Sequence record: NC_042013.1
DNA length: 64,000 nucleotides
Strand: one strand, 5' to 3'
The notes beneath the pieces are model-generated. The model worked only from the letters and a program-made list of their open reading frames with translations, made no database searches and was not told the DNA's origin. Of the stretch, positions 9,799 to 41,394 are shown in pieces; the first letter of the stretch is position 1, and each line of letters starts with the position of its first letter. The translations under genes and the position numbers were made by a program.

Positions 9799-10185
9799 CT
9801 ATGTGTTCCAAACTGGTGTAAATTCGTCATAAAGTTCTTTATCCAATACGAAATACATATTATCAAAGCTTTCCATACAGAAAATAATTTCAACCTTCCT
9901 GTTTTTTGCTTTTTTTAACGCAATAGCATATAACCGTGTGAATAAATTAAAAAGAATAAAATAGTCTGCTTCCATAAAATCCACACTACCATTATTCGAG
10001 TGTTTAACAAGTTTACGATTTTTATTAAAGGGTAACTTATATTTGTTATCAGGGACAGCTTGTGGGACTGAAGTTGAAAATATATCTAACCCGTCTGAAT
10101 TATCAACAGCCGCGCACAAATGACTATATGCTCGTCTTGATATAGCAGTAATATCTATTTCGAGTTGTTTATAATTAATTGACAT
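9799..10185 (-). CDS. family B paralogue
   Basis: KELYDEFTPVW. Confidence 0.8.
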   Translation of the reverse strand: MSINYKQLEIDITAISRRAYSHLCAAVDNSDGLDIFSTSVPQAVPDNKYKLPFNKNRKLVKHSNNGSVDFMEADYFILFNLFTRLYAIALKKAKNRKVEIIFCMESFDNMYFVLDKELYDEFTPVWNT

Positions 10186-12940: not shown

Positions 12941-13003
12941 TAAAAATCCTTCCACTAAAATCAATTAATGGAAGGATATCATGTTTTCAAAAATAGTCAA
13001 TTA

Positions 13004-13327
13004 CTATTCATCCTCGTCTCTTAGAAGAACGTCCCCTACTGTTTCCCAACGATCTTCATCATAATTCCAATGACGTTTATCATAAATCTGAAGGAATAGT
13101 GTGTAACCAAAAAGGGAAATATTCAATGATGGGCCAGCATGATCTTGGCGATGGAAATGAATATCCAAATCAAAGTCAAACAAATCATAAGCTGCAAAAC
13201 GGTCGAGTTGAATATTGTAGGCTTTATTTTCTGTTAAAAGGTTTTCACGATGAAAATAAGGAACCGTGATATAATCCCCTTGTGGATCATAAAAAGGGTT
13301 TGGGAGGGAGAACCGTAATTTAAACAT
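13004..13327 (-). CDS. hypothetical protein
   Basis: 107-aa ORF just downstream of tRNA-His. Confidence 0.75.
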   Translation of the reverse strand: MFKLRFSLPNPFYDPQGDYITVPYFHRENLLTENKAYNIQLDRFAAYDLFDFDLDIHFHRQDHAGPSLNISLFGYTLFLQIYDKRHWNYDEDRWETVGDVLLRDEDE

Positions 13328-13349
13328 TTTTTGATACCTTCATAACAAA

Positions 13350-13424
13350 TGGTACTTGGACGGGGAATTGAACCACGATCTCCGGTGCCACAAACCAGCG
13401 TACTAACCATTGTACGATCCAAGC
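13350..13424 (-). tRNA. tRNA-His(GUG), no G-1, A73 discriminator
   Basis: GCTTGGA/TCCAAGT acceptor, loop TT-GTG-GC, base -1 is T, ends ACCA. Confidence 0.92.
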
Positions 13425-13450
13425 ATATGTTATGAATATAGCAAAACTAT

Positions 13451-13714
13451 TTATACGTTGTCAACAAATTTAATCTTAACAACTTCTAAATATTTTTCCG
13501 GCGATGTTTCAAACTTTCGCAATGCGTCGAGATTGTTATTATTGTAAGGGAGACTTTCTACATCGCATACGTGATCGTGCACGTCACCATTCCAAAGATT
13601 TTCAAGATTTTTTGGTGGAGATGCCCACGTGGAACCAGCATCCTCTACAACTTTAGAATGACCCGGCGTGCGAACAATCCACTTATTAGTACCTACAAGA
13701 CGAATGCCAAACAT
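13451..13714 (-). CDS. hypothetical protein
   Basis: 87-aa ORF between tRNA-Ser and tRNA-His. Confidence 0.6.
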   Translation of the reverse strand: MFGIRLVGTNKWIVRTPGHSKVVEDAGSTWASPPKNLENLWNGDVHDHVCDVESLPYNNNNLDALRKFETSPEKYLEVVKIKFVDNV

Positions 13715-13747
13715 TTGAAAGGTTCCTTATGAATGTTGTACTCATGA

Positions 13748-13776
13748 AAAAAGGATAGGTTTTACCCTATCCTTTT
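13748..13776 (-). terminator. intrinsic terminator after tRNA-Ser
   Basis: AAAAAAGGATAGG/CCCTATCCTTTT hairpin with T-tracts. Confidence 0.7.
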
Positions 13777-13787
13777 AACTACCCCTG

Positions 13788-13879
13788 TGGAGGATGGGGT
13801 GGGATTCGAACCCACGGTACGCTCTCACGCACGCTAGTTTTCAAGACTAGTTCCATAAACCGGACTCGGACACCCATCC
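13788..13879 (-). tRNA. tRNA-Ser(UGA)
   Basis: cloverleaf with long variable arm, loop CT-TGA-AA, encoded CCA. Confidence 0.95.
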
Positions 13880-13904
13880 ATGATAACAACAAGGATGAGG
13901 ATTG

Positions 13905-14023
13905 CTTGAGTGGCAGGGCTCGAACCTGCGACATTCTGATTACTTTTAGAGGCTTCAGAATCGAACTGAATAGTTACCTTTGCCTCTTACAGTCAGACGC
14001 TCTACCAACTGAGCTACACCCAA
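13905..14023 (-). tRNA. interrupted tRNA, Asn-type body, 46-nt insertion in the anticodon loop
   Basis: TTGGGTG/CACTCAA acceptor, perfect D arm, TCTGA/TCAGA anticodon stem, ATGTC variable loop, GCAGG-TTCGAGC-CCTGC T arm; removing 13988-13943 gives loop CT-GTT-AA; no CCA. Confidence 0.85.
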
Positions 14024-14050
14024 ACAATCCGCATCGCTTATTGTTTGTAT

Positions 14051-14079
14051 AATATACATTGTTATTTATCTGGCGTCAA
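14051..14079 (-). promoter_or_regulatory. sigma70-like promoter (with overlapping TAAATA) for the interrupted tRNA-Asn
   Basis: TTGACG-17 nt-TATATT; TAAATA at 14063-14068. Confidence 0.7.
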
Positions 14080-14101
14080 CATTTAAATTTATTAAAAGGA
14101 C

Positions 14102-14130
14102 AAAAAAATACCCCCTGACGGGGTATTTTT
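14102..14130. terminator. bidirectional intrinsic terminator
   Basis: AAAAAATACCCC-CTGAC-GGGGTATTTTT. Confidence 0.7.
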
Positions 14131-14292
14131 ATTAGATTGGTGTGTTAAGGAATGTGCAATCTCTATCATTAACGAGGATATCCATTAGTGTTTGTGCCGT
14201 TGATGATAATGGTTGTGTTATTCTTATAGTTTGATTTTGGTAAAGATGTTTACCATTACCTATAAGGGTATTTACGAAAAAATGCCTATTTT

Positions 14293-14616
14293 TCAAACAA
14301 TTGCAAAACGAATGCGATTAGATGTGTTAAGAATCTTAACATAATTCATACAAAATATTTTTTTATCAGTTGCTACCAGTATTTCCATAAAACCGGTAAT
14401 CACGTCATCAATTTTAGAAACGGACCTTGACACAACATAATAAGGATTATCCTCAAACACAAACGTTGGCACGGATACAGAATAAACGCGGTCTATATAT
14501 TTCTCTTGAATAATCTTTTCAAAATTTTTAACGACACCGATTTCTAGTTCGGACAGTTCATCGGATACAATTGAATATGTGTTGCAAAACATCTCAAGAT
14601 TAAATGGCTTGATCAT
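14293..14616 (-). CDS. family C (PF..NFEKI.QEKY.DR) paralogue
   Basis: MIKPFN...VKNFEKIIQEKYIDRVY. Confidence 0.85.
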   Translation of the reverse strand: MIKPFNLEMFCNTYSIVSDELSELEIGVVKNFEKIIQEKYIDRVYSVSVPTFVFEDNPYYVVSRSVSKIDDVITGFMEILVATDKKIFCMNYVKILNTSNRIRFAIV

Positions 14617-14941
14617 GTAAATTCCCTATATAATGAAAAAACGCATACGACCCAAAAACTCTTTCATACTTATACATGTATAATTTTTTATCGGTAGTGA
14701 TCATAATTTCCAAGCTATTTGTAATTACCATCATTATATCAGGGACGGACGTTGCTTTGAAATTTAGTGATGAGTATATACCTACATTAGCTTCTAATAA
14801 ACTAAAAATTCGATCAGAATATTTTTCTTGAACGATTTGTTCAAAGTTTCTTAAAATATCAATATCTTTTTCTAAGAATTTATCAACATTCCGATAGGGA
14901 ATATTAAAAAATTTTGCCGCGCAAAATGGGCCTATCTTCAT
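14600..14941 (-). CDS. family C paralogue
   Basis: LRNFEQIVQEKYSDRIF. Confidence 0.85.
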   Translation of the reverse strand: MKIGPFCAAKFFNIPYRNVDKFLEKDIDILRNFEQIVQEKYSDRIFSLLEANVGIYSSLNFKATSVPDIMMVITNSLEIMITTDKKLYMYKYERVFGSYAFFHYIGNLHDQAI

Positions 14942-15291
14942 AATGGTTTCTCCGCAAATCGGATGAATGGCTGTGTTGAAATACCAATACGAAAATCATA
15001 TAAAAATAAAACAACGTCAGATGTTACCATTTTTTCCATGATCCATAAAATAGCAGCATCGACATCTGGAACGTATGTTGCTAACCATTTAATCTCGATG
15101 TCTCTATTTGCTTTCACCCTATCCACAGTGAATATACGATGATCATACTTTTCACGAATTATTTTCTCTAAATTTTTTAGTTTTGCTTTTTCCGCAGACG
15201 TGAAATTAGGATATGGAATTTTTAACATAGGTTTTTTGGATGGTTTATCATCCTCGCCAATGAATACTTTAAAATCAAATCTGCTAATCAT
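14938..15291 (-). CDS. family C paralogue
   Basis: LKNLEKIIREKYDHRIF. Confidence 0.85.
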   Translation of the reverse strand: MISRFDFKVFIGEDDKPSKKPMLKIPYPNFTSAEKAKLKNLEKIIREKYDHRIFTVDRVKANRDIEIKWLATYVPDVDAAILWIMEKMVTSDVVLFLYDFRIGISTQPFIRFAEKPL

Positions 15292-20660: not shown

Positions 20661-20702
20661 GTTTCGATGATATAGTTATACACATCTAAAAAATAATGTC
20701 AA
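20661..20702 (-). promoter_or_regulatory. sigma70-like early promoter, conserved motif copy 4
   Basis: TTGACATTATTTTT...TATAAC-N6-ATCGAAAC. Confidence 0.75.
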
Positions 20703-20744
20703 TGACTTATATAAAAAAAGCCCCAATCAAGGGGCTTTTAGTGT

Positions 20745-20915
20745 TTAAAGAATACCGGGAACGTATTTCAGTAAACTCAATATCGCGATGATAACAATAA
20801 TAAGCTTGGCGATCTTAGATGCAGGGTTTCCTAATCCAAGCATATCAACCAAATAACAACACAATACCGCAACCAAAAATACAATAAGAATAGAAATCAA
20901 AACGGATACCGTCAT
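20745..20915 (-). CDS. 56-aa two-helix membrane protein
   Basis: read manually: MTVSVLISILIVFLVAVLCVYLVDMLGLGNPASKIAKLIIVIIAILSLLKYVPGIL; GGAG RBS; terminator 20714-20739 downstream. Confidence 0.7.
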   Translation of the reverse strand: MTVSVLISILIVFLVAVLCCYLVDMLGLGNPASKIAKLIIVIIAILSLLKYVPGIL

Positions 20916-20974
20916 AATAAATCTCCAATTAACCTATATTAACTTTTGATTAGATCATTTGGTTCCATCAGACA

Positions 20975-21007
20975 TAAAAAAACTCCCCACAAAGGAGGAG
21001 TCTTTTT
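20975..21007 (-). terminator. intrinsic terminator ending the 21-kb RNA unit
   Basis: ACTCC-CC/GG-A-GGAGT hairpin followed by T-tract on minus strand. Confidence 0.65.
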
Positions 21008-21010
21008 GCT

Positions 21011-21441
21011 TGGCATGAAGGTAGCCGAAAGTGTGAGGATCGAACTCACGCATACCGGCTCAAAACGCAAATGCTATGCCGGGTGCTCTACCACGTACTG
21101 ACTTTCACAAATCCACCTTAATAATGCTTTTCGTTTTTGCGTTCAATCACTGGGCCTGTTTGGCATTGCACCAACTCAATGTTTTTAAAGCCTTTGCGTT
21201 TGTTACCCGCAAACCTAATGACAAAACTTACTAAGCATTCTATATATGAACCGCTACTCACTTTCCTCTGAGCTAACTTTCGATAAAAGATTTTCGAACT
21301 AAAAGCATTTCCCATCCTAACGACCTACTAAGGGGTATCCGTAGATAATGCCTTGGTACTAGTCCTTTAGAACTTCTGTGCGTCAATCCCAATTCCCTCA
21401 AGGGGTTTCAGTCAAGAACTGCCGTAATCCGAAAATCTTTA
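21011..21441 (-). ncRNA. candidate large ornate ncRNA (about 430 nt) ending in a tRNA-like domain
   Basis: own promoter and terminator; 11-bp AAAGATTTTCG/CGAAAATCTTT and 12/13-bp AATGCTTTTAGTT/AACGAAAAGCATT long-range helices plus many local hairpins. Confidence 0.6.
21025..21107 (-). tRNA. tRNA-like element with 18-nt expanded anticodon loop
   Basis: TGAAAGT/ACTTTCG acceptor, degenerate D arm with TGGTA, CCGGC/GCCGG stem, GTGAG-TTCGATC-CTCAC T arm, no CCA. Confidence 0.7.
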
Positions 21442-21444
21442 GGT

Positions 21445-21473
21445 AATATACGGGACACAAACCCGTTTGTCAA
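21445..21473 (-). promoter_or_regulatory. sigma70-like promoter of the 21-kb RNA
   Basis: TTGACA-17 nt-TATATT. Confidence 0.75.
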
Positions 21474-21562
21474 CAACTATTTTTATGTTTTTTACGAAAA
21501 ATATTTTATTTACTTTATACATATGTTATTATGTAGTTTAATAAAATACATGGTAATTTAAA

Positions 21563-22327
21563 ATGCATAATCGTAAGTCAAAATACACAAAAGAATTATT
21601 AGAACCAATCGTAAAAGAATCTCATTCAATGGCTACGGTTTTAAGGAAATTAAATTTACACCCTACAGGCGGATGTCATCAATATCTAAAAAATAAAATA
21701 ATCAATCATGGAATAGATATGTCGCATTTCACCGGCCAAGGGTGGAATAAAGGTTTAACAGCCGAAACCTCCGATGGAGTTAAAAGATCGCGTGATGCAA
21801 ATGCATATACTGATGAACAAATTTTATGTAAAAATTCTCCGCAAACAAGGTCAAGCCAGCTAAAATCTTTGATGATCAAAAACGGAAGAGAATATATATG
21901 CGAAAATGGTCATCCAGCAGAATGGATGGGACAGCCAATGACATTACATATTGATCATATTAATGGCGAGCGTACGGACAACCGCTTAGAAAACTTACGG
22001 TTCCTATGCCCTAATTGTCATCAACAAACGGACACGTGGGGTAGCAGAAAAGTAAAGTATAAATCAAAACGAGAAACTAAAACATCCACACCTAAAATTA
22101 AAAAACAATATACGTGTATAGAATGCGGAACGGTATCGCATCGGCGTGGTCGATTTTGTAGTAAAGAATGTGTCAATATCAACAGAAACAATAGATATCC
22201 ATTAGGGAATGTTCCAAAAGAAGATATCATTGCGAAATTAAACGAACTTGGGAATAATTATCTACAAACAGGTAAATTCTTCGGTGTATCTGATAACGCA
22301 ATTAGAAAGCGTTTGAAAACAAAATGA
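21563..22327 (+). CDS. free-standing HNH endonuclease with C-terminal Cys4 finger/HTH
   Basis: LHIDHINGERTDNRLENLRFLCPNCHQQT; CIECG...CSKEC. Confidence 0.9.
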   Translation: MHNRKSKYTKELLEPIVKESHSMATVLRKLNLHPTGGCHQYLKNKIINHGIDMSHFTGQGWNKGLTAETSDGVKRSRDANAYTDEQILCKNSPQTRSSQLKSLMIKNGREYICENGHPAEWMGQPMTLHIDHINGERTDNRLENLRFLCPNCHQQTDTWGSRKVKYKSKRETKTSTPKIKKQYTCIECGTVSHRRGRFCSKECVNINRNNRYPLGNVPKEDIIAKLNELGNNYLQTGKFFGVSDNAIRKRLKTK

Positions 22328-23030: not shown

Positions 23031-23468
23031 TTAATTCCTTTCTACAGCAAAGTTTATATCCCAACTTATTTTGCAATCCTCGTCATTCATATTAATCCCT
23101 ACTATACGTGAAAATATGCTCTGAAGATATAGATTTTTTTCATTATCGTTTAACAAATTTTGGAATACTTCTTTTATTGCGTCGAGGGAATTACGTCTTA
23201 CATTACATAACCTTACTGGTTTACCATTTATGGACGCGGCGTCGTGTACGACATAAAGATCATTTTTGTATTTGATAATTTGTCGATCCAGATTAAAAAT
23301 TCTTTTGGGATATTCTGTTTGTAGTTCATTGATCATTTGTTTGAGATGATCTGCCATTAGATTTCCGGTATATATTAGGACTTGATGTCCTGATTTCATA
23401 ATACCTCTTGATTTATGTTGATCATCTATAAAAGGTTCTATGAATTCATCGAAATCAAACGGACGCAT
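23031..23468 (-). CDS. family C-related protein (long form)
   Basis: start refined to MRPFDFDEF; ELQTEYPKRIF. Confidence 0.75.
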   Translation of the reverse strand: MRPFDFDEFIEPFIDDQHKSRGIMKSGHQVLIYTGNLMADHLKQMINELQTEYPKRIFNLDRQIIKYKNDLYVVHDAASINGKPVRLCNVRRNSLDAIKEVFQNLLNDNEKNLYLQSIFSRIVGINMNDEDCKISWDINFAVERN

Positions 23469-25104: not shown

Positions 25105-25213
25105 TGGTGCCTCAGAGGGGATTCGAACTCCTGACCTGCGGGTTATGAAAACTTTCCTCGAAACCTACCGAAAATTTTCAAAACCGCTGCTCTACCAACT
25201 GAGCTACTGAGGC
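25105..25213 (-). tRNA. interrupted tRNA, Met(CAU)-type, 33-nt insertion in the anticodon loop
   Basis: GCCTCAG/CTGAGGC acceptor, A73-CCA, perfect D arm, TTCGAAT T-loop; removing 25180-25148 gives loop TT-CAT-AA. Confidence 0.85.
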
Positions 25214-25232: not shown

Positions 25233-25268
25233 TATTTATAATATACACGATGTTATTATGAACGTCAA
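25233..25268 (-). promoter_or_regulatory. tandem sigma70-like and late (TATAAATA) promoter for the interrupted tRNA-Met
   Basis: TTGACG-17 nt-TATATT; TATAAATA at 25240-25233. Confidence 0.75.
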
Positions 25269-28000: not shown

Positions 28001-28064
28001 AAGGTGCGTGATTATGGGTCACACGCTTACCTCCTATGTTTTTATGAGTTAGGTAACTCCGTTG

Positions 28065-28146
28065 TTGGTGGTGTTGGATTCGAACCAACGTGGCTTAACA
28101 CTACGGATTTACAGTCCGTCCCAATCGACCGCTCTGGCAACCACCA
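28065..28146 (-). tRNA. tRNA-Tyr(GUA), bacterial long-variable-arm type
   Basis: ACGGA-CT-GTA-AA-TCCGT, long variable arm, A73, CCA not encoded. Confidence 0.88.
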
Positions 28147-30384: not shown

Positions 30385-32745
30385 GTGAGTACTAACCCTA
30401 CTGGCGGATATGTTCGTGTTGTCGGTTCTACTAAGAATGACAGTGATACACACAAAAGTTTAATCAATTTATTTGATATGAATAAAGGCGTACTTACCTT
30501 TAAAGCTCTTGAAGCTGGTGATGGTATTACATTAACACTTGTTGACGCAGACCCACGTGTTAATGATGGCCGTAAAGTTATTAGAATTGATTCTAACGGT
30601 GGAGGAGGAACAGCAACTGGTAGCTCTTGGTTGAATTATGTTGGTCCACCGTCAACAAGTGATGGTATTGACAACGATTTTAGTTTTGATCCTGAAACAG
30701 GTACGATTTATATTAAAAAAGACGGAGAGTGGAGTTCTATTGGTTTTCTTACAGGTACTAAAGGTGATACCGGACCTGTTGGTCCAGTAGGTCCAAGCGG
30801 TCCACGAGGAGTTAAAGGTGATAAGGGGAATGACGGTACTACTGGTGTTGCAGGTCCAATCGGACCCCAAGGGATTGCAGGTCCAACTGGTTTAGATGGC
30901 GCTGCGGGTATTCAAGGCCCAAAGGGTGATAAGGGGGATAATGGTCCAATTGGCGAGAACGGTTCACAAGGACCACAAGGTATTCAAGGTATTGCTGGAC
31001 CACAAGGATTACAAGGAGATGTTGGTCCCGCTGGAAATCAGGGAGAAACCGGAGCTACCGGACCACGCGGTCTTCAAGGAGAACAAGGATTAGCAGTTGT
31101 TCCTGACGAATATGGTATTTTGAACGAAACTAAAATTACAGAAATAGAAACATCTGGTATTGACCGTGTATTGTTGATAAGAGCTAACGGTGATGAACGT
31201 ACCGATACGGCAAATCCTGCATCTATTTCCGGTAATATGTCAAGTCATTTGGTTCGTTTCAATTCTGGTAGTAATCAATGGATGGATTTTGGACCAATAA
31301 CGGGGATTAAAGGAGAACAAGGCCCACAAGGCGAATCTGGTATTGCCGGTCCTTCCGGTTCTGCTGGTATCCAAGGTATTCAAGGTGTTGAAGGCCCACA
31401 AGGTATCCAAGGTGAAGCCGGTATTCAGGGAGGACGAGGAGAAACTGGTCCTCAAGGTGAAGTTGGTGAGATTGGTCCTGCTGGTCCACAAGGCATCCAA
31501 GGCCCAAAAGGTGATAAGGGAGATACCGGAGAAAAAGGTTCCGATGGTAAAGGCTATGAGGCTAATGAATTTGGAATTTTTGATGAGACTAAAATCTCTG
31601 AAATCGAACAACTTGCAGTCGATTGGACGTTTCTTATAACCGAGGGTGGCGATCAACGATTAAATAATCTCGTTCCAGCTGACATCGCAGGTGATCGTAG
31701 TGGGAGCCTCGTTGGATATGTTGCTGCTGATAATAAGTGGTATAGTTATGGCAAAGTAACCGGTATTGAAGGACCACGAGGAACGGCTGGCATTAATGGT
31801 ACAAACGGACGTGATGGTCGCGATGGTCGAGATGGCAGAGATGGACGTGACGGTCTTCAAGGAAGAGACGGTCTTCAAGGTCAAACCGGAGTTGCAGGAC
31901 AACGCGGTGAAAACGGTATTGACGGAACAATTGGGCCACGAGGCCCACAAGGCGAAGCTGGTATTGACGGAAATAATTTGAATGTTAAAGGTCACGTTCC
32001 AACTATTGATGACTTGCCAACAGAAAACTTACAAGACGGTGATGCTTTCCTCGTTGCGGACGTATTTTATATTTACTACGATGGTCAGTGGAGAGGGACT
32101 GGTATTGTTCAAGGTCCAAAAGGAGCCAAAGGCGATACCGGAGATATAGGTCCACAAGGACCGCAGGGAGATATTGGTCCTAAAGGCGATCAAGGCGTTC
32201 CCGGTCTACAAGGAATACCCGGTATTCAAGGAGAACAAGGTATTCAAGGTCCAAAAGGTGAGGATGGTCAACAAGGTTCGCCGGGTGAAAATGGTACTAA
32301 TGGTTCCTCTGTAGAATTTATTAACGGAGTAGAGGTAATAAACGGAGAGGTCAATCTTACCGCTGCAAACGTTGGTGCTCGACCAGATGATTGGACACCT
32401 ACGTGGGATGAAGTACGTGATAAACCAACGTCTGCCACAATCCCTCAATTAGTATATTCTGATCTTCTAGGTTCAAGAGCAAATAACATTTGGTATACAA
32501 ATGCTGGGCAAAGAGAACGTATTGTAAATGTTAGCACGAACTACATAACTTCAAGTTCATCATCTATGATACAAATGCGTGCTACAGGGACGACCGAACC
32601 AGTATTCTCTGTTAGAGGGCAAGCAGCAGGAACTGGCTCTACAAACCAAGTCATGCAAGCACACGTCCCGGCAGGGTGGCAGTATAGGTTTGTACCGGGG
32701 ACGAATCGTCAAATTAACACTTGGTTTGAGGGTGATTACGTATAA
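30385..32745 (+). CDS. collagen-like (Gly-X-Y) tail fibre/whisker protein
   Basis: four G-X-Y tracts, two related globular spacer domains, C-terminal beta domain (RERIVNVS...VPAGWQYR); TAAATA at 30345. Confidence 0.85.
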
Positions 32746-40503: not shown

Positions 40504-41394
40504 TTACACCTTTTTATATCCGTAAATTACTTCTTGATCTTTTGGCGCAATAATAAAGTGTTCCGTTCCATCATTGTTTTTACTGTATATCTGATAACCT
40601 TCTTTATCTAAACGAGAAGCTGCACGTTTTGCCATTGCGATATAAAGTTTGCCTAATCCGTGGGAGTCTTCCCCGTCAAACGTTACCATATATGGGGTTT
40701 GGGTTTTAATGAACTGTAGCAGATAGCTTGTCACAATCGATAATACTTTCAATGCATTACCTTTTTCACGTGGTGGGATGTATGAATCGTGACTGCCTTT
40801 TACTTTAAGGCCGTATTCATATGACCACGAATTGTCTCCGTGATGAACGAAGTTGGCAAAATACTTCTGACCGTCAACCTCAAATTCATAATACTTATGA
40901 CCACTGGTTGATAAATTTTTTGGTAATTTATGTGGTGTATCGAATAATTCTGTTAGATTTTTCTTGATAACAAATGATGCTGCACCGCCGAGGTCATGTT
41001 CTACAACGGTGTATCCTAAAGCCTCGAGGCGTTTATTAAGTACACGCGCCATTGCTGAATATAAAGAACCGAGACCAACATTTTTGTCACCAAAAAAACT
41101 GATCGTATCCGGTTTATTTCCTTTAATAAAACGTTCAACATATGCCACTACATATGATAAAATTTTCTTACCGTCTATATCTTTAGTTCTTTTAGGCGTA
41201 TATGATACTTTATCATAATCGTCCAAATACCCGTATGATACGCGCCAGTTTTTTCCAGAGCTTTTGTCAAAATCAATTCGATACTCTTCTCCATCAACCT
41301 CAAATTTATATCGTTTGAGGTTGTGAAGACCACGGGTATCATTTGTGAATTTTTTGGGTTTAGTATCAAATAATTCAGACAGTAGCATAACCAA
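40504..41394 (-). CDS. probable internal-head/virion protein with two ELFD repeats
   Basis: two copies of ELFDT...Y.FEVDG..Y...YG...K.LS.V...FIK...P....F.G...GLG.LY.AMA; TAAATA at 41416-41421. Confidence 0.75.
   Translation of the reverse strand: MVMLLSELFDTKPKKFTNDTRGLHNLKRYKFEVDGEEYRIDFDKSSGKNWRVSYGYLDDYDKVSYTPKRTKDIDGKKILSYVVAYVERFIKGNKPDTISFFGDKNVGLGSLYSAMARVLNKRLEALGYTVVEHDLGGAASFVIKKNLTELFDTPHKLPKNLSTSGHKYYEFEVDGQKYFANFVHHGDNSWSYEYGLKVKGSHDSYIPPREKGNALKVLSIVTSYLLQFIKTQTPYMVTFDGEDSHGLGKLYIAMAKRAASRLDKEGYQIYSKNNDGTEHFIIAPKDQEVIYGYKKV

Follow-up and report, generated by a model that had tools for sequence, protein, structure and literature searches.

An interrupted tRNA-Asn gene in Agrobacterium phage Atu_ph07

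We analyzed a 64,000-nt stretch of DNA (hereafter, the window), which is identical to positions 310001-374000 of the genome record NC_042013.1 of Agrobacterium phage Atu_ph07, a 490,380-bp jumbo myovirus. On the minus strand, positions 13905-14023 of the window match the Rfam tRNA model (RF00005, model positions 1-71) from end to end at 57.2 bits (gathering score 29, E 3e-11), and a block of 47 nt in the anticodon loop is left unaligned. Default ARAGORN finds 21 tRNAs in the window, but this gene is not among them and none is for Asn or Thr. When introns are allowed, ARAGORN finds the gene and calls it Tyr(gta). The gene consists of a 5′ exon (13989-14023, minus strand; nt 1-35, namely the acceptor, D arm, anticodon stem and C32 U33 G34 U35), a 46-nt insert (13943-13988) and a 3′ exon (13905-13942; U36 A37 A38, anticodon stem, variable loop ATGTC, T arm, acceptor and G73). 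CCA is not encoded: G73 is followed by CAA. A sigma-70-like promoter (TTGACG-17-TATATT, 10 of 12 matches) is located at 14051-14079 (minus strand), about 27 nt upstream. The 5′ leader (14024-14045) and the 3′ trailer (13883-13904) form a predicted duplex of about 20 bp that extends the outer acceptor stem (-23 to -24.5 kcal/mol, z -7.4). It should be mentioned that the preliminary description had noted only about 11 bp of this extension. tRNA-Ser(UGA) follows at 13788-13879 and is probably on the same transcript.

The outer body possesses U1-A72, G73 and a 5-nt variable loop. To identify the body, we compared it with 546 distinct phage tRNAs in which the anticodon loop was masked. The best match is tRNA-Asn and no tRNA-Tyr appears near the top. 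Furthermore, the related Sinorhizobium phage Phosso has an intact tRNA-Asn gene, and alignment with this gene places the insert exactly between CTGT and TAA, that is, between nt 35 and 36. Removal of the insert therefore gives the anticodon GUU. No intact tRNA-Asn gene exists in the window or, in a piecewise scan of the whole genome, elsewhere in the phage. The preliminary description, which had assigned the gene to tRNA-Asn and the insert to an elbow without an anticodon arm, is supported. The alternative registers giving GUA (Tyr) or GGU (Thr), which it had also noted, do exist.

Two further genes of the phage are interrupted at the same place. One is located at 25105-25213 (minus strand; Rfam 54.7 bits) and has a 33-nt hairpin-type insert (25146-25178; fold z -4.0) and a promoter at 25240-25268. 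The other lies outside the window at record positions 68156-68280. The motif TTGAC[GA]-17-TATATT stands before both genes. In the body comparison, the former matched an amber suppressor and Thr-UGU best and never Ser, and the latter matched Lys-UUU best. Phosso has intact Thr-UGU and Lys-UUU genes, and alignment with them places the inserts between TTTG and TAA and between CTTT and TAA, respectively. Removal of the inserts gives UGU and UUU. The genome paper reports tRNAs for all amino acids except Asn and Thr, and its supplementary table lists three over-long genes without comment: tRNA-Tyr-GTA (119 nt), tRNA-Ser-TGA (109 nt) and tRNA-Gln-TTG (125 nt). When these are re-read with the boundary between nt 35 and 36, they become Asn, Thr and Lys-UUU, and the phage then covers all 20 amino acids. 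The piecewise scan showed no other Asn, Thr or Lys-UUU gene. The codons AAT, AAA and ACA are the most used of their boxes (43.7, 42.9 and 22.5 per thousand, respectively). The same correction probably applies to many large phage genomes, because bacterial-mode tRNA finders skip these genes and eukaryotic-mode finders assign the wrong anticodon.

Predicted mini-tRNA fold of the insert and related inserts in viral contigs

When the 46-nt insert is folded alone, it forms a 6-bp stem stacked on a 5-bp arm with the loop UUCGAUU. The energy is -11.6 kcal/mol (z -2.4), so the fold is only weakly better than chance on its own. The insert begins with an acceptor-like 5′ strand AAGAGGC (13982-13988), of which the first layer is an A·A mismatch. 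This is followed by the linker AAAGGTAACTA (13971-13981) with a D-loop-like GG, the T-arm TTCAG TTCGATT CTGAA (13954-13970) and the acceptor-like 3′ strand GCCTCTA plus the 4-nt tail AAAG (13943-13953), which stands in the place of N73-CCA. No Rfam family other than tRNA reaches E 10 over the insert. Hammerhead, twister, pistol and hatchet ribozymes were not detected in 13000-15000 at E up to 10, nor in the window at the gathering score.

To test whether the insert belongs to a wider group, we performed two pattern scans of IMG/VR, which asked only for a tRNA D-arm and T-arm set too far apart, and then applied a structural filter. These scans returned many interrupted tRNA genes. Some are eukaryote-type tRNA-Tyr and tRNA-Ile introns of giant and algal viruses. 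In contrast, a large group from big phage contigs carries tRNA-shaped inserts. We applied one rule to this group: the 3′ junction lies 11 nt after the inner T-stem (7 acceptor positions, N73 and 3 more) and the outer loop is 7 nt. In 17 of 20 sequences, this rule puts the 5′ junction exactly at the first layer of a 7-layer inner helix, so that the insert equals inner tRNA positions 1-76, as the preliminary description had claimed for this gene alone. In those 17 sequences, the rebuilt anticodon fits the body: GUU with U1 and G73 (Asn), UUU with G1 and A73 (Lys), and UCU with an Arg-type D arm. Two more targeted scans raised the set to about 40 distinct cases. However, the targeted scans used a pattern that fixes the tail at 4 nt, and only the earlier scans are unbiased for this feature. 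When a 7-nt outer loop was imposed, a 4-nt tail gave 6.0 paired layers, as compared with 2.2-3.6 for other tail lengths, although the set is partly pre-selected. All Asn-reading nested genes have U1 and G73, except for that in contig L233, which has G1. The inserts range from complete nested tRNAs ending in CCA to 43-51-nt mini-tRNAs. For example, a tRNA-Asn lies inside tRNA-Lys in contig L031, a tRNA-Phe inside tRNA-Arg in L127/L220, and a 77-nt tRNA inside tRNA-Arg in L184. The outer insertion point varies between nt 34 and 35 and nt 36 and 37 (between nt 33 and 34 only in the doubtful fit of L224, or by eye in L192), while the inner geometry stays fixed. Therefore, we rejected an endonuclease that measures from the outer tRNA body.

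We aligned 16 homologous or analogous mini-tRNA inserts from other viral contigs. In this alignment, 92.6% of cells are paired and 15 of 17 pairs show changes on both sides. The covariation score is 1.02, against 0.205 in shuffles (0 of 500) and 0.09-0.21 when partners are slid. The pairs of the acceptor-like helix (columns 10-16/49-55) all covary. The equivalents of G53, U54, C56, A58 and C61, and the first G of the linker, are invariant. A MAFFT alignment of the inserts alone was out of register at the 5′ end and was not used. The closest relatives of the Atu_ph07 insert are in L155 (a 285-kb contig) and L284 (208 kb). They share the linker AAAGGUAA, the loop UUCGAUU and the tail AAAG. Both stems differ: the acceptor-like helix is re-paired by compensatory changes in both contigs, and the T-stem in L155. 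The tail AAAG is also shared with contigs L176, L246, L285 and L174. The leader-trailer duplex is present, with different sequence, in L155 and L284, but it is not shared by nested genes in general. L284 also has a Lys insert orthologous to that of the third Atu_ph07 gene. A covariance model built without the Lys insert of Atu_ph07 finds this insert at 29 bits (E 4e-4) and finds nothing else in the phage or in the tRNA region of Phosso. In contrast, the Thr gene and its relatives (L039, L227 and L152) carry plain hairpins with 2-3-nt tails and no T-arm; homologous inserts of the Thr type occur in L039/L095.

The class is nearly absent from cellular genomes. In 596 Gb of bacterial and archaeal genomes, the pattern gave 120 hits, which were almost all chance, as expected for 15 fixed bases. 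One convincing nested gene (L330) is on an 11-kb MAG contig, and one hit (L386) is a duplication of a tRNA 3′ half of the integration type. An exact 40-mer of the insert hit only Atu_ph07 itself in IMG/VR, and a BLAST search of the locus against isolated phages found only matches to the neighbouring tRNA-Ser. Megablast of 34 of the 38 nested genes (4629 nt of the 6140-nt concatenate) against 50,697 isolate genomes found nothing. Thus, among these isolates no other cultured phage carries close copies, and Atu_ph07, which infects the genetically tractable strain A. tumefaciens C58, is the one cultured member that we could find.

A proposed pathway for removal of the insert

We then examined whether the phage encodes enzymes that could join the exons. 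The protein gp261 matches PF09511 (E 2.9e-29) plus the tRNA-specific C-terminal domain T4_Rnl1_C (PF20819; E 3.6e-7), both above the curated cut-offs, and a tblastn search with T4 Rnl1 finds gp261 at 6e-23. A second ligase, gp086, matches PF09414, is called a 2′-5′ ligase in the genome paper, and lies 1 kb from the Lys gene. In contrast, tblastn detected no relative of T4 Pnkp in the genome (best E 0.4), although a divergent kinase cannot be excluded and two metallo-phosphoesterases (gp267 and gp626) are annotated. A search for relatives with gp261 returned only itself, and tblastn of gp261 and gp086 against the fetched viral loci showed no ligase next to nested tRNAs.

Based on these results, we propose that this gene, the phage's only tRNA-Asn(GUU) gene, is transcribed from its own promoter as a precursor, from which the mini-tRNA is removed as an intron. 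RNase P may recognize the inner elbow and cut at its position +1, leaving U35 with a 3′-OH. RNase P is known to measure the acceptor/T-stem stack from the elbow, and the geometry fits: 5 + 7 stacked layers measured from the T-loop end exactly at the 5′ junction, and U is at position -1. An unidentified endonuclease may then cut after inner position 76 and leave a 5′-phosphate on U36; the candidates are RNase E/G, an RNase BN/Z-type enzyme or a phage nuclease. These are the ends that ATP-dependent ligases join without healing, and the apparent absence of Pnkp fits them. The halves may stay together through the outer tRNA body and the leader-trailer duplex, which could alternatively delay maturation of the outer ends, and gp261 or gp086 may seal them into the 7-nt loop CUGUUAA. 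However, in the absence of RNA data, that splicing occurs at all and every enzyme assignment are inferred, and we consider this pathway only somewhat more probable than not (about 0.55). The mismatch at the inner 1.72 pair is atypical. The tail AAAG, with which leader nt 32-35 can partly pair, is not CCA, and both should weaken cleavage by RNase P. No known enzyme is expected to cut a CCA-less substrate precisely after position 76, since RNase Z normally cuts after N73. Moreover, the hairpin-type inserts of the Thr genes look more like RNase III products or 4.5S-type RNase P substrates, and one mechanism may not cover all inserts. The preliminary description had inferred only the RNase P cut: it offered no enzyme for the 3′ cut or for ligation, and included neither the two sister genes nor the wider class.

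The main alternative, although a less likely one, is that the intron gives tRNA-Asn but is removed by other enzymes, such as a dedicated phage endonuclease, RNase III or RNase E acting on the helix formed by nt 32-35 with the tail, or a cyclic-phosphate nuclease followed by healing, with sealing by gp086, gp261 or a host RtcB. In this case, the mini-tRNA shape would serve folding or protein binding. The hairpin-type inserts of the Thr genes have a 2-nt 3′ stagger typical of RNase III products; in CCA-less mini-tRNAs, C32-U33 pair with the last two tail bases next to a 3-nt bulge UAA; metallo-phosphoesterases are annotated; and HNH genes sit next to two of the three genes. However, the continuum to complete tRNAs with CCA and the exact 1-76 boundaries are what tRNA end-processing predicts, and a sequence- or duplex-specific nuclease does not predict them. 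Furthermore, the pairing of nt 32-35 with 73-76 is not conserved; for example, ACCA tails do not pair. It is also possible, but unlikely, that the RNA is not spliced and that the chimera, the released mini-tRNA or the halves act as a decoy for anticodon nucleases or other tRNA-targeting defences, as a regulator or as a store of tRNA halves. The inserts are mostly in ANN-decoding tRNAs (Asn, Lys, Thr, Ile and Arg-UCU), several of which are probably targets of known anticodon nucleases, and an interrupted anticodon loop would be immune to such nucleases. This reading cannot be excluded without RNA data. However, a perfect 7-nt loop with an anticodon matching the body can be rebuilt in nearly every case, and the three genes fill exactly the gaps in the tRNA set of the phage for its most used codons. 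A decoy would not need that.

Two other readings are very unlikely. A canonical intron between nt 37 and 38 of the bulge-helix-bulge type would give tRNA-Tyr(GUA), as called by tRNAscan-SE in the genome paper and by ARAGORN, and one 3-nt bulge (UAA) does lie next to a 4-layer helix C32-U35/A73-G76 with 3 of 4 pairs. However, the body is class I, whereas bacterial tRNA-Tyr is class II, and the window has a proper tRNA-Tyr at 28064-28146. In addition to the body matches and the alignment with Phosso, there is no second bulge: in the minimum free energy fold, the UAA bulge is followed by 2 bp and a 3x3 internal loop. The central helix is not conserved in relatives. The same logic would make a class I tRNA-Ser of the sister gene. 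A dead gene, destroyed by insertion of a tRNA fragment as in a recombination or integration scar, might be suggested by duplications such as L386 and by the intact genes of Phosso, the closest isolate. However, compensatory changes keep both inner helices in 16 lineages, the exons remain perfect tRNA, the gene has its own promoter, orthologous inserts occur in L155 and L284, and there are three such genes and no intact substitute.

Comparison with other interrupted and tRNA-like RNAs

Literature searches found no mechanistic study of such inserts. The only precedent that they found is the "enigmatic", highly conserved introns in tRNA genes of Lak megaphages (PMC6784885; repeated in PMC8346664), one of which, in tRNA-Thr(TGT), "itself may encode a tRNA". 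The Lak introns are also short inserts in tRNA genes of very large phages that are missed by bacterial-mode tRNA finders, and the true boundary of this Thr intron is offset from the predicted canonical site, as here. They were reported from uncultured metagenomic genomes without mechanism, rule or covariation. The new elements here are a minimal version without an anticodon arm, three interrupted genes in a cultured phage, the 1-76 rule, covariation support and a testable pathway. As a more tentative proposal, phages of bacteria may have a third way of splicing tRNA, in which the intron is a tRNA mimic that recruits RNase P at its 5′ end and a 3′-end nuclease after position 76. Exon joining of nested tRNA genes would then be a physiological task of the long-puzzling phage Rnl1/Rnl2-type RNA ligases, beyond repair of host-inflicted tRNA damage. 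Full nested tRNAs would give two tRNAs from one gene, and the mini-tRNAs would be their reduced descendants, kept only as processing handles.

Archaeal and eukaryal tRNA introns (bulge-helix-bulge, EndA/Sen endonuclease, RtcB or Trl1 ligase) are also short, non-catalytic and in the anticodon loop, and are removed by proteins with the exons then ligated. Here, however, the position is between nt 35 and 36 rather than nt 37 and 38, the boundaries are set by the intron's own tRNA-like geometry, and the expected ends are 3′-OH/5′-P rather than cyclic phosphate/5′-OH. Group I introns, which seem to be the only type so far established in bacterial tRNA genes (cyanobacterial tRNA-Leu, Agrobacterium tRNA-Arg and Azoarcus tRNA-Ile), also lie in the anticodon loop, but they are longer than 200 nt and have a catalytic core. 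In mitochondrial tRNA punctuation and MALAT1 mascRNA, an embedded tRNA or tRNA-like fold likewise appears to define the sites cut by RNase P and RNase Z. In those systems the flanks are not rejoined, whereas here the flanks are halves of another tRNA that must be ligated, and the 3′ boundary is after position 76, not after N73. In the anticodon-loop repair of T4 (PrrC damage, Pnkp healing and Rnl1 sealing), the ligase is of the same family as gp261, whose proposed substrate is also a nick in a tRNA anticodon loop, but the break proposed here would be programmed processing of the phage's own precursor. In the split and permuted tRNA genes of Nanoarchaeum equitans and Cyanidioschyzon merolae, tRNA halves are also joined after transcription, but these genes rely on bulge-helix-bulge-like motifs formed by leader and trailer sequences and on the archaeal or eukaryal endonuclease.

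Two further interrupted tRNA genes in Atu_ph07

A second interrupted tRNA gene is present at 25105-25213 (-) of the window. This gene has a class I, Thr-type body (G1-C72, C2-G71, A73, CCA encoded), which is split between nt 35 and 36 by a 33-nt hairpin insert, AAAAUUUUC...GGAAAGUUUUCA (25146-25178). The last two bases of the insert pair with U34-G35, giving a 2-nt 3′ stagger. This gene was published as 'tRNA-Ser-TGA 109'. Homologous hairpin inserts occur in the viral loci L039/L095, L227 and L152. Furthermore, in Phosso (locus L003), there is a 'tRNA-Pyl(cta)' (31732-31807), which is an amber suppressor, and its D arm and anticodon stem are nearly identical to those of the interrupted Atu_ph07 Thr gene. 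Phosso also has an 86-nt tRNA-Asn (9817-9902) and an 83-nt tRNA-Thr (41179-41261) with long extra arms.

A third interrupted tRNA gene lies outside the window, at Atu_ph07 record positions 68156-68280 (23157-23281 (-) in L004, a locus from this phage). This gene is Lys-UUU with a 48-nt mini-tRNA insert (T-loop UGCAAAU, tail ACAG), and was published as 'tRNA-Gln-TTG 125'. It is located between an HNH gene (gp090) and, 1 kb away, the gene for the RNA ligase gp086. An orthologous insert occurs in the viral contig L284.

Leader-trailer duplexes

In the tRNA-Asn gene, a leader-trailer duplex of about 20 bp, formed by 14024-14045 and 13883-13904 (-), extends the acceptor stem (z -7.4). The homologues in the viral contigs L155 and L284 share this duplex with different sequence. 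Thus, the duplex covaries. The flanks of tRNA-His at 13350-13424 form a weaker one (z -4.5). In contrast, the other 20 tRNAs in the window score z -2.1 or weaker. Similar flank pairing is visible around several Phosso tRNAs.

RNA ligases and factors tied to tRNA charging

In the genome paper, gp086 (21520-22164 (-) in L004) is listed as a '2′-5′ RNA ligase'. However, gp086 matches PF09414 (ATP-dependent RNA ligase) at 5e-25. Therefore, together with gp261 (20671-21864 (-) in L310, the locus carrying this gene), the phage has two ATP-dependent RNA ligases. No T4-type polynucleotide kinase-phosphatase was found by tblastn. The phage also encodes a 235-aa threonyl-tRNA-synthetase-like fragment (gp705, record 483864-484571) and a small GatB/YqeY-like 'tRNA amidotransferase' (gp656, record 453147-453605). 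These are factors tied to Thr and Asn charging, the same two amino acids whose tRNAs are interrupted.

Other unusual tRNA genes

About thirty genes, in IMG/VR loci such as L141, L052, L099, L117, L128, L059, L106 and L184 (about 5825), have perfect tRNA acceptor, D and T arms. However, the anticodon arm is replaced by a hairpin, which is followed by a conserved ACAGCAA motif and an A-rich tail. No 7-nt anticodon loop can be rebuilt in these genes, and we do not recognize this class. In one nested gene, the outer anticodon is CAU, the inner helix pairs 7 of 7 and the tail is CAAG; the contig may be a binned phage. In contrast, the locus L386 is a tandem duplication of a tRNA 3′ half, which is typical of an integration site, and is not an intron.
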